Assembly: GCF_902459465.1 (NCBI RefSeq)
Contig: NC_047069.1
Location: 20,770,001-20,834,000 of the forward strand
Source of the DNA: Asterias rubens
Taxonomy: Eukaryota
Length of the DNA stretch: 64,000 bases
Direction: 5' to 3'
The notes under the pieces are model-generated. The model made no database searches. It was given only the letters and a program-made list of their open reading frames with translations, and was not told the origin of the DNA. Within the stretch, counting starts at the first letter, position 1. Each line of letters starts with the position of its first letter. Below are positions 35,544 to 42,617 of this stretch, piece after piece. The position numbers were made by a program, and so were the translations under genes.

Positions 35544-35680
35544 GTGAAGGGATAACGGATGAAGATCTAAACACACTCTCACGAGAGGACGTGGATCACT
35601 TATTTCGAGGATATAGCTTTTCAACAAAGAGAAAGGCCTGGGAGGTGTTAAAAAACCTCAGGAAGGATGATGAGGATGAG
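35544..35680 (+). CDS. Isolated exon encoding a SAM-like helical motif
   Basis: ttccag| ... gatgag|gtaact. Translates EGITDEDLNTLSREDVDHLFRGYSFSTKRKAWEVLKNLRKDDEDE and ends in phase 0. The SAM assignment rests only on the I.DEDL..L..ED...LF pattern. Confidence 0.5.
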
Positions 35681-36287
35681 GTAACTATAGATGAGTTGAC
35701 CTTTGATGTCTTACCTAGACCAAAACAAGACTTTCTGCCTGGCAGTATGTGCACACATTGTGTTTTGCATAAAATTTGTTTTAAGAGTGATGTCAAAGGG
35801 CAGATCACCTTTGAATCAAGTGACCTCTTATATCATCCATTGATCCGTGTAATTCAGAACTAAAGAGCAAGCATACTGCCGGGCAGCCACCCCCAAAAAT
35901 GTAAGCAAATGGAACAAGTTGACATGATACTGATTGGTGAAATCCCACAAAAATGTCAATTTTATGCTTAATAGTTTTGCCGATTTCATGCAGTCTCTTA
36001 CGGTAACTCATTAAAGAATTGTTGTTTTATTTTAATGTATTTTTTCAAAATCAGGAAATTTAGGCAGCTACTTAAATTTTTAGGGTTACAATAACAGAGC
36101 TTTGATTTTGAAATGGTGTCACTATTGATATTGTTCTTTAAATTCCTTTCTGAAATTTATTCATTTATTTATTCATTTTCCCCAGGGAGAACAGGTCTTT
36201 GATAACTGATGGGGCGACCCTGGTTTAACAAGACAAAATAAATAAATATAAATAAATAAATTCAGTAGTATACTTTGATAATTACAG

Positions 36288-39833: not shown

Positions 39834-39883
39834 CAGAATGACATTTCAGAATTCAGACACATTTTGCTTCATTGTTCTTCCAG

Positions 39884-42617
39884 ATGACTTCAATATCCGA
39901 GACTGTTGGCACCAGTCTCCTCCTACTGGAGAGTGCCACACCCTTTGCGAGTGCTCTGCCTTCTGCAAATGATGTGCACACAAAGCCTGTCAAAAAACCT
40001 GTCAAAAAACCTGTAAGTTCACCTTCATGGAGTGATGTTACGTGGAACTCTACTAGTGATGATTTCACTCCTCCACAGAAACGAAAATATGCAGATACAA
40101 CACCCAAGAATTCAACACCATACAGTAGTAAGGAATCAACTCCTCTCAGGAAACGAAGCTGCAACAGTAGTTTGTTTCAGAAATTTTGTGATTCTCCGTG
40201 TGTTTCTCCAATCTGTAAGTCACGGCCATTGACATATCCATGTGGAATAGAAGCGCCATTTCCTTTAGCGAAAGAACACAGCACATACTTGTCTAAAACT
40301 GACAAGCAGACATTTTGTAAGAACTACAAAACATACAAAATCTTAATTGATACAATTTATAATGTGATATTCTGTGCCATCAAAAGAAAACCAACCAAGA
40401 CGGAGCGAGATTTGATTGCAATTAATCTTTGCAGGAAGTATCCTGTACTATCCTGTAATGATGACAATGCTCACAGTGCGCTTAGTTATGCGATAAGGAA
40501 GAAGTGCAACAATCACCACAAGAGAAAAGTAGAGAAGATGAAGGGGAAAGATGATGAGATGAGAGAGGAGGCTGTACTTTCCTGCGATGAAAACGTTTCT
40601 CACAATGTGCCAAGTTCCATCAAGGTGACAAAGAGTTGCCATTCCAGAAAAGTATCAGAGCTGCAGGGGAAAGATGGTGAGATGAGAGAGGAGGCTGTAC
40701 TTTCCTGCGATGAAAACGTTTCTCACAATGTGCCAAGTTCCATCAAGGTGACAAAGAGTTGCCATTCCAGAAAAGTATCAGAGCTGCAGGGGAAAGATGG
40801 TGAGATGAGAGAGGAGGCTGTACTTTCCTGTGATGACAACGTTTCTCACAATGTGCCAAGTTCCATCAAGGTGACAAATCGCCGCCGTTCAAGAAAGATA
40901 GCAGGGCTGCAGGAGACTGATGATGATGAGATGAGAGATGAGGATGAAGGTACATGTACTGATGACCAAGATATCGATGATACACCAAGTCAAAAACGCC
41001 ACAACATAGCTCTGCAAACTGAACTAAAGAAGAAAACTCCAAACAGCAAAAGTGTAGACGTATTATTCCAGAAGGGGTCAAAAGATAGAATTGAGTGGAT
41101 ACACAAACTAAACGGAGGAACACGTGCCAAAGATGTCCTGGTGGTTTACCCCTGTTATAGCAAGGCTAGTGTTGTAAGTAATTTGCAATTTAACAGTTGT
41201 TTGCTAATTAACACTACTAGTACTAGTGTATTATAAATCTTTTCAACATTTGTCTTCACACTTCACAGGGCATCTAAAACCAGTATAAAATGTGCCGCTC
41301 TGATTACAGCTGGGTGATGTATGCATCACCCTAACATTGCTTACGACACTCACCGAAGGGGGGGGGGATGGGGATCTCCCTTTTAAATTGTGCGATACAA
41401 CAACAAAAATAACAATTCAGTATGAACTTGCCATCTTTCCAGTAGTCCAAATGGCTATCCACCGTTAAGTAAATTTTTCCCATTTGAATAAAATTTTCTC
41501 ATTTTTTTTCAGTGCCTTCGGCAGCTAGAATTGATGCTATGCCAACCAGGGCTGGTTGATTTTGTTGATGGCAACTGGAAGCAGTTGAAAAAAGTGTTGG
41601 CCAAGCTGATTCAGGTAGGCATGTTAACTAAAGCGATCTCTGGCTGATCTAAAAGCTTAATGGGCATTAATCATCACTCAGCTACCTTTAATCTGATCAA
41701 GGACCAGCCTATCGAGTCCACCTGAAGCAAACTGAGGCCAATCAAGCCAGCATGTAGTTGTGTTAGGGCTATCCAGCCATACAGTGTTTGTGTGAATGCC
41801 TACCATGTGTACACCTGTCCAGCCAGCACAATACGCATGCATAAAACATGGCTTGGTTAAATTCTCTGTTTATGATCAAAATAAAAAATGGTACATTTTG
41901 TTGTCTCTTTGTAGAATGTCATGGCCAAGCGGTCCAGCGCATTGGACTCAAGTTCTGAGGTTGTTGGAATGTGGGTTCAAATCCCGCCATGGCTGGCCAT
42001 GATACTTGTGGCTCTGAGTAAAGACACTTAACAACATCCTTTGAATGGGATGTTAAGTCGTTGTTCCCATGAGTTGTGTAAATGCACGTACAAGACCCAA
42101 GGACACTCTTCGTGAAAGAGAAGGGGCTTGCCCTGGTGTTTCTGGTTTGACTGCCAAATATTAGTGTACCAGAGCGCCCAATAGGCGAAAACCAACACTA
42201 TAAAAGACTCCACTATTGTTATGACCATTATTAATATTATTATTTTTAGATGATGGAAGTGTTCTCCAGATGTTGGTGACACATCTTGCTGGACCGAAGA
42301 ATGCAAAGTATGTGTTGCAGTTTGACGACAAAGGCAGGGATATGGGCAAGACTGAGAGAAACCAACCATTCCTTCTAATTTTGGGAACATTTGGTAACCT
42401 CAAAGAGGTATCTCTTATCATCGACAAACAAATATTCAGCAAGATGAAGGATAACTTAACAGTGGTGAACATCCTGCTATTGCTCTTCGCAGGAAATTTC
42501 ATACTTAATCTGGATTATCCAGTCACCGCTAAGACAATCTATCAGTGTCTTGAATACCATCTGCTCGGAACTTGTGCTAAACCCAAAGCAAAGGCATACA
42601 TTGACTTGTTCAAGTAA
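39884..42617 (+). CDS. SAMD3-like transposon accessory gene, copy 2 (body exons)
   Basis: Exons 39884-41173 (phase-0 acceptor cttccag|), 41513-41614 and 42250-42617. Motifs: AINLCRKYPVL, SKDRIEWI...KDVLVVYPCY, FILNLDYPVTAKTIYQCLEYHLLG. A linking exon before 42250 is needed for phase and was not identified, so intactness is uncertain. Confidence 0.6.
40544..40912 (+). repeat. Three in-frame 123-bp (41-aa) coding tandem repeats
   Basis: The unit GKD(D/G)EMREEAVLSCDENVSHNVPSSIKVTKSCHSRKVSELQ starts at 40544, 40667 and 40790; the third copy diverges at its end. Confidence 0.92.
41915..42248 (+). mobile_element. tRNA-derived SINE
   Basis: A box tggccaagcggtc (~41922), B box ggttcaaatcc (41974-41984), core cttgtggctctgagtaaagacactt and an (att/tat)n tail. 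Confidence 0.7.

Follow-up and report, generated by a model that had tools for sequence, protein, structure and literature searches.

A protein kinase reading frame conserved in the accessory gene of CACTA/EnSpm-type transposons from a starfish and a ribbon worm

Cut-and-paste transposons carry transposases and DNA-binding helpers and, at times, Ulp1 proteases, TET/JBP dioxygenases or esterases. CACTA elements in plants capture fragments of host genes, and such captured fragments are partial and decay neutrally. Cellular proteins, too, bring SAM oligomerisation domains and kinases together, as in the yeast partners Ste11/Ste50, in ASK3, in ZAK/MAP3K20 and in the Eph receptors. Here we analyze a stretch of 64,000 nucleotides (nt) from the starfish Asterias rubens (NCBI RefSeq assembly GCF_902459465.1, contig NC_047069.1, positions 20,770,001 to 20,834,000, forward strand), called the window below. 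In this window, an open reading frame (ORF) for a protein kinase lies within an intron of the accessory gene of a CACTA/EnSpm-type DNA transposon.

The closest known system is the En/Spm element of maize. Its tnpA and tnpD products are reported (Masson et al. 1991) to come from one transcription unit by alternative splicing, with extra ORFs that are intronic to the other product. Similar to En/Spm, the element described here has a CACT-type terminal inverted repeat (TIR), subterminal repeats and two element-encoded products. Unlike in En/Spm, the transposase is a separate, divergent gene, the intronic ORF is a kinase, the host is an animal and alternative splicing is predicted. A CACT-type TIR, subterminal repeats and two ORFs also make up the general layout of CACTA elements (PMC4158355). 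The cellular SAM-kinases resemble our element in combining a SAM domain with a kinase, which is TKL-like (tyrosine kinase-like) as in RAF and ZAK. They differ from it in that no membership of their sequence families was found, in the order SAM, basic stretch, helix and kinase, and in that the fusion here is a predicted splice product. Pack-CACTA elements likewise hold host-type coding sequence within a CACTA element, but the kinase described here is complete, conserved in three divergent elements and placed for co-transcription with the accessory gene.

Our literature search turned up no case in which a conserved eukaryotic protein kinase is a standard gene of a transposon, and nothing that links SAMD3 to transposons or EnSpm to SAM. 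The conserved kinase embedded in a CACTA accessory gene is a new part, and the exact termini of this CACTA family are newly supplied here. Should splicing join the kinase to the SAM exon, animals would have an equivalent of the En/Spm product hidden in the intron of another. A transposon could then, by phosphorylation, control its transposition complex or the responses of its host.

A kinase within a CACTA-type element

The kinase ORF (36288-37303, + strand) lies in the intron that follows exon 2 of the accessory gene (35544-35680, +) and encodes a basic stretch resembling a nuclear localization signal (NLS), a charged helical region and a TKL-like kinase domain. It opens behind an acceptor in phase 0, ...aattacag|ATT AAA at 36287|36288. 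The 315-residue translation matched PF00069 Pkinase (1e-22, 81 bits, cut-off 31.7) and PF07714 PK_Tyr_Ser-Thr (3e-23, 83 bits, cut-off 23.1), with the kinase domain occupying its C-terminal two-thirds. Among kinases of solved structure, TNNI3K and RAF come closest, yet they score just ~50–60 bits; by sequence, the embedded kinase is TKL-like. The last kinase codons, FTEIIKTLEGIQ and a stop, are found at 39795-39833 (+; stop 39831-39833) and align with FKEIVKTL of a metagenomic relative. A 5'-truncated long interspersed nuclear element (LINE) separates them from the rest of the kinase (37305-39794, boundaries approximate, +). The LINE matches RVT_1 (1.4e-28), holds a reverse transcriptase ORF at 37387-39666 and ends in a (TAA)n tail.

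All similarity searches were run exon by exon. When the body exon of the accessory gene (39884-41173, +) was used in a word search, two relatives emerged, one of them the gene model P0002 of the nemertean Lineus longissimus (locus L001, OU343000.1 reversed, 7034825-7058506). The body is homologous to P0001 (6e-50) and P0002 (1e-49), and the first 36 residues of P0002 are homologous to the SAM-like exon 2 of the window and fused directly to the body. Further loci came from Styela clava (L002), Ciona intestinalis (L003) and a marine metagenome contig of the Joint Genome Institute (JGI; L004). L001 is free of the LINE and contains the SAM exon (9969-10108), the kinase (10770-11815), the body (12460-13383) and the tail (14226-14582). 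L004, also without a LINE, opens inside the kinase and continues with body, middle exon, tail and element terminus. The siblings suggested by the first-pass annotation of the window, LINE-free and in the order SAM, kinase, body and tail, thus exist, complete in Lineus and from the kinase onward in L004.

The transposon ends at 47896. Its 3' end (47786-47896, −) consists of subterminal GGCTCA/TGAGCC repeats and the TIR CACTGGAAATAAAATTGGCTC at 47876-47896, which occurs once in the window where none is expected. It is identical at 21 of 21 positions to both TIRs of L001 (1630-1650 and 21082-21102), where 32-nt inverted repeats starting with CACTGGAAATAAAATTGGCTC, at 1630 and 21102, bound an element of 19.5 kilobases (kb). 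Clusters of GGCTCA/TGAGCC mark positions 47790-47880 of the window; L001 and L003 have them at either end and L004 has one at its 3' end, against a background density of ~0.1 motifs per 300 nt; the TIRs of L003, which begin CACAGC, carry the same subterminal motif. Additionally, the last ~100 nt of the window element share 83% identity with the ends of L001 and L004, and the terminus lies at the distance downstream of the tail exon that these two elements predict. It is the exact 21-mer, the GGCTCA cluster and the 83%-identical terminus that place the end of the element at 47896 and mark it as CACTA/EnSpm-type. A target-site duplication of 3 bp is typical of CACTA/EnSpm elements; L001 is flanked by CCA and CAC, which allows a 2-bp CA duplication at most, and the window contains one end only.

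Upstream of the accessory gene of L001, the opposite strand carries an ORF of 663 residues that matches Transposase_21 weakly. A Transposase_21-like gene adjoins the accessory gene divergently in both Lineus and Ciona and has the same relative position in a further contig, L006, where it adjoins the body exon. The three transposases are mutually 39–40% identical. Against PF02992 the relatives' transposase scored E 0.0014 and 18 bits, under the 28.6-bit cut-off, and the Ciona match is likewise weak. In L001 and L003 a single pair of TIRs encloses transposase and accessory gene. The assignment to CACTA/EnSpm (CMC), near certain from these sequences, rests on the TIRs and the weak transposase match. 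As the first-pass annotation supposed, the cassette is transposon-borne, with a CACTA-type terminus at 47876-47896 and with relatives beside a Transposase_21-like gene inside TIRs.

The kinase occupies the same intron in the same orientation, as a full-length intron-free ORF, in three elements: those of the window, Lineus and L004. The window kinase is 48% identical to that of Lineus (304 residues) and 62% identical to that of L004, and H-x-D, DLKxNN, DFG and P-x-E are kept in all three. Pair by pair, the nonsynonymous divergence (dN) of the kinase (0.26, 0.43 and 0.57) tracks that of body and tail (0.30–0.53). Synonymous divergence (dS) is saturated, so no dN/dS ratio can be quoted; with synonymous sites saturated across the three elements, 47–63% of kinase residues are still shared. 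Termini belonging to the kinase itself are lacking, and siblings L001 and L004 carry it as well. Its stop precedes the body acceptor by 50 nt in the window and by 14 nt in L004, with no AATAAA or ATTAAA between. Because the stop is so close and no poly(A) signal intervenes, kinase RNA must run into the body exon whichever promoter is used. Position, co-divergence, catalytic motifs, the lack of own termini and the lack of room for polyadenylation together make it near certain that the kinase is conserved cargo of the transposon. The same layout in a ribbon worm identifies it, at the level of sequence, as an old part of this lineage, and because tunicate elements lack it, it was acquired within the family. 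Retention in the same intron while the elements diverged to ~50% protein identity argues that the kinase does something for the element.

Predicted splicing of the kinase and rival explanations

Direct reading of exon 2 gave the boundaries ccag|GT GAA ... GAT GAG|gtaact, entered in phase 1 and left in phase 0, around a peptide, EGITDEDLNTLSREDVDHLFRGYSFSTKRKAWEVLKNLRKDDEDE, that forms the C-terminal half of the SAM-like domain. A homologue of exon 2 that keeps both phases was seen in each of Lineus (L001 9969-10108, 46% identity), Ciona and Styela. The body exon opens at ttcttccag|ATG ACT (39883|39884), also in phase 0 and 50 nt past the kinase stop. The first-pass annotation had claimed just these phases for the end of the SAM-like exon and for the acceptors at 36287 and 39883, as well as the 50 nt between the stop at 39833 and the body acceptor with the LINE between the kinase parts; all were seen again. 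Splicing from SAM to body, skipping the kinase, was also part of that proposal, and this junction is used in the gene models P0002 (Lineus) and P0053/P0020 (Styela) and in P0012, the protein of a transcript-like Logan contig.

In both starfish and Lineus, a phase-0 AG acceptor opens the kinase and is compatible with the phase-0 donor of exon 2. This conserved phase-0 layout, as read from the two sequences, is newly described. The acceptor tracts of both species contain 9–10 pyrimidines in 20 positions at the proximal site and 16 in 20 at the distal site, and a weak proximal acceptor with a strong distal one is expected of a regulated alternative 3' splice site. In the starfish, in-frame tga taa stand directly before the kinase acceptor and the first ATG is codon 29. 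Nevertheless, kinase codons 8–27 (RLRNKESHERTKKRKINNLK) match RLRNKSARER / KKRKISVLK of Lineus, counted from the Lineus phase-0 acceptor.

The explanation that we favor, with somewhat better than an even chance of being right, is alternative choice of the 3' splice site from a shared phase-0 donor, in a transposon sub-lineage that has the kinase as cargo. Intact relatives encode the transposase on one strand and, on the other, an accessory protein whose SAM-fold domain (exons 1–2) is followed by a body of two modules and by the products of the middle and tail exons. In the sub-lineage, represented by starfish, Lineus and the marine metagenome host, the kinase ORF occupies the intron after exon 2. 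The strong distal acceptor yields SAM-body-tail, and the weak proximal acceptor would yield SAM-NLS-kinase, ending just ahead of the body exon. The basic NLS-like stretch would direct the kinase product to the nucleus, and SAM-SAM contacts could recruit it to the accessory protein. For the SAM-to-kinase splice itself we see roughly even odds that it is used. Co-assembly of the two isoforms is speculation.

Several results weigh against alternative splicing to the kinase. Two kinase searches recovered, from the element family, only the ORF of the window itself and the fragment of L004, and neither a transcript nor a protein joining SAM to the kinase came to light. Three sequencing runs presumed to be RNA placed no contig on any of these exons and showed neither junction 35680^36288 nor junction 35680^39884, yielding only LINE pieces and small repeats. 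No Pfam SAM family (SAM_1, SAM_2 or SAM_PNT) matched at E up to 10, whether the query was exon 2 of the window, the exons of Lineus or the complete N-terminal domain of P0020 or P0012. The tunicate elements manage without a kinase. The 5' end of the kinase is known from two loci only, L004 being cut, and in Lineus a one-base frame break in an A7 run (10838-10844) lies within the conserved N-terminal peptide. Because this break splits the peptide between two frames, the phase argument for Lineus reads across it. Lastly, Lineus has an in-frame ATG (10749) seven codons upstream of the kinase acceptor, and in both species a Met (M29 in the starfish) precedes the helical segment, so that a kinase initiated independently is possible.

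These last features, together with the lack of any SAM-kinase protein or transcript in the collections searched and the weakness of the proximal acceptors, would suit a nested separate gene with its own promoter and start, never fused to SAM, though still conserved cargo of the transposon. However, the starfish sequence encodes the conserved basic peptide ahead of its first ATG and directly after in-frame stops, so that the peptide is translatable only once spliced. In addition, a phase-0 AG acceptor fits the shared donor in both species, and in the window and L004 there is neither room nor signal for a 3' end of the kinase's own. We regard a nested gene as somewhat unlikely. Passive capture, as of host gene fragments by plant CACTA elements, would instead make the kinase a functionless Pack-CACTA-type passenger carried since its capture. 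The broken window kinase, with Lys at the αC-Glu position, and the kinase-free tunicate relatives would be in keeping with this. Against it stand the 47–63% of residues and the catalytic motifs shared despite saturated synonymous sites, a dN equal to that of the accessory-gene exons and a full-length, intron-free ORF in the same place and orientation each time. No close host kinase is available as a source either, the nearest outside match being 31% identical, and passive capture is improbable.

The remaining explanation treats the locus as an ordinary host gene with alternative exons that is conserved between phyla and lies near transposon debris by chance. The region is single copy at ≥90% identity by DNA depth, and the Styela relative stands alone in a Sec3 intron without a transposase, as might be expected of a host gene. 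Nonetheless, subterminal repeats and a TIR identical over 21 nt follow the tail at the expected distance, as in L001 and L004. Transposase and accessory gene share one TIR pair in Lineus and Ciona, and the window copy has several inactivating lesions. The family is also rare and patchy: a profile search of 1.84 billion representative proteins found 51 relatives, of tunicate, nemertean, fish and metagenome or Logan origin. A host gene is thus very improbable. Beyond alternative splicing of a transposon-borne kinase, we propose only tentatively, and with more doubt than confidence, what the product would do. A CACTA lineage in at least two animal phyla may encode, through the proximal 3' splice site, a nuclear SAM-tethered TKL kinase that joins the accessory protein on the subterminal repeats through SAM-SAM contacts and phosphorylates the transposition complex or host chromatin or repair factors. 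If this reading is true, a transposon would possess a signalling enzyme of its own.

The SAM-like domain, the remaining exons and the state of the starfish copy

Of the SAM-like domain, exon 2 of the window supplies just the last three helices. The first helices come, in four relatives, from an exon 1 of 22–33 codons that ends in phase 1, as it does in Styela, Ciona and Lineus. An AlphaFold model of residues 1–72 of Styela P0020 has five helices at a predicted local distance difference test score (pLDDT) of 82. Its best fold match is the SAM domain of SAMD1 (Z 7.4, root mean square deviation 2.3 Å, 65 of 69 residues), and most of the fold matches listed for it are SAM domains, including those of ASK3, Ste50 and the Eph receptors. 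The N-terminal domain of the accessory protein is therefore predicted to be SAM-like by the fold of a homologue. The SAM fold claimed earlier accordingly stands in the five-helix model, a prediction, while the Pfam SAM hidden Markov models (HMMs) did not recover it.

The body exon contains module 1 (YPxGIxxPFPL...ALRKKxNN) and module 2 (SQKRH...ELKKK...YPCY) with an acidic linker between them, and its donor is GTT|gtaagt. An in-frame tandem duplication of 3 × 123 nt (40523-40926, repeat family D3) in the acidic linker is specific to this copy. The middle exon (41513-41614, +), with both splice sites read, is homologous to L004 2361-2460. Relative to L004 it has a 1-nt frame break near 41593, evident from the phase-1 acceptors of the tail at three loci. 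The tail exon (42250-42617, +), with an NQPF...LNLxYP motif and a stop codon at its end, is 49–58% identical to the tails of Lineus and L004 and 30–35% identical to tunicate proteins. For body and tail, the model of P0058 has a pLDDT of 77; neither Foldseek nor VIA-align gave a convincing PDB match, and a body/tail profile matched no PDB sequence. The best structural hits were scattered small helical DNA-binding domains, which we rejected as the fold because the best Z of 4.9 is too weak.

Positions 35544 to 47896 of the window make up the 3' two-thirds of a CACTA/EnSpm-type DNA transposon that is old, dead and present in a single copy. Homologue-peptide scans, tblastn and a small HMM found nothing credible as exon 1 in window 15000-35544. 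Neither a tblastn search with the Lineus transposase nor a TIR search found a transposase or 5' TIR anywhere in the 64 kb. Since the 5' TIR, the transposase and exon 1 were all unfound in the window, the copy is 5'-truncated, and it is dead. The 4-nt start exon ATG G|gtaaac proposed in the first-pass annotation is present as a string at 35101-35104, but it is unlike exon 1 of any relative, and we rejected it as exon 1 for that lack of resemblance. By DNA depth, the locus is single copy at ≥90% identity and the LINE is repeated, at 2–10 times the depth of its flanks. In the intron after the SAM exon, a 44-nt small dispersed repeat (35730-35773) recurs between differing flanks in numerous other, unrelated contigs from this species.

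The kinase of the window is itself damaged. At ~37227-37241 its frame breaks, and the C-terminal LCRRDLKKLSLRCVADLRLR runs on in another frame, matching PCRVELKKLNLCCVAD of L004. An independent ENA contig, P0003, stops at the identical premature stop, and a contig from a DNA run spanning 36268-37272 shows zero indels. Alignment to Lineus (IVKELRIL) and to TNNI3K places Lys at the αC-Glu position of the window kinase (VVKKLRIL), as had been noted earlier. The window kinase retains the Lys of IAVK, the Asp of HCD, DFG and the Glu of PDE, and has lost the αC Glu. In contrast, the Lineus kinase holds all five catalytic residues (ALK, KELRIL, HND, DFG and PPE) as well as the G-loop. The PDE at the APE position had also been counted as a defect, and it is none because the relatives read PPE (Lineus) and PEE (L004) with the Glu kept. 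Judged from these sequences, the kinase family looks active and the window copy does not. The view that this copy is dead proved right, with more defects than were first listed.

Further relatives and neighboring sequence

In the two kinase searches, the relatives beyond the window ORF and the L004 fragment came to just one Logan kinase, P0069 (L007 747-1961, a contig of SRR26849153), which is 31% identical. P0069 shares HNDLKSNN and VIIDFGQ and has a long basic, KKRK-rich N-terminus; its 2.3-kb contig holds no SAM or body sequence.

Two tunicate relatives have an accessory gene without a kinase, and one of them, that of Ciona, lies beside a transposase. The Styela relative (L002 10001-12168) has SAM and two tandem copies of body module 1, and has no tail, kinase or transposase. 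It lies alone in an intron of Sec3/EXOC1, where NCBI annotates it as a gene, and may have been domesticated or stranded there. The label 'SAMD3-like' for the accessory gene is provisional; SAMD3 is the name of none of the 51 profile matches, and the fish relatives are labelled 'uncharacterized'. L001 has two one-base frame breaks, at the N-terminus of the kinase and where the body exon ends, and so is itself slightly damaged. Its 3531-4471 is 97–99% identical to 15922-16301 and 19455-20012, an inverted duplication of the 3' end of the transposase gene, by which the 19.5-kb element is internally rearranged.

A metagenome scan with the TIR returned three contigs, none of which encodes family proteins. 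The JGI metagenome contig L008, which encodes no family protein, agrees with the TIR of Lineus over 25 nt (CACTGGAAATAAAATTGGCTCAACC, at 17-37); this is a solo end of an element or else coincidence.

Just upstream of the kinase-bearing element, window 25877-31714 (+) contains another member of this gene superfamily, which is more diverged and has no Pfam match. Its ORFs are 25877-26938, 26951-27769 and 27886-28392, the last with a module-2-like block GEDEQTIKQHIEILKKE...YPCLF (P0001, E 4e-4), and a tail-like ORF (31412-31714, ...VFNLVYSKKAANTMTFLQRV) follows them. This upstream gene may mark where the 5' part of the element was lost. Between the tail exon and the 3' TIR lies an intact ATG-to-stop ORF of 312 residues (45469-46407, +), without a Pfam match and with weak similarity (E 0.005) to the C-terminus of ORF 26951-27769; at the equivalent position Lineus has a different ORF of 411 residues (L001 16871-18106). 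An 18-nt tandem repeat, ~12 copies of AAAATCAAGTACCATGGC, follows the 312-residue ORF at 46600-46839. Two remnants of other transposase ORFs flank the element: a PIF/Harbinger-type DDE_Tnp_4 ORF at 23392-24393 (−; 6e-23) and, ~1 kb beyond the CACTA terminus, an IS1595/ISXO2-like DDE ORF at 48875-49444 (−; 4e-17).

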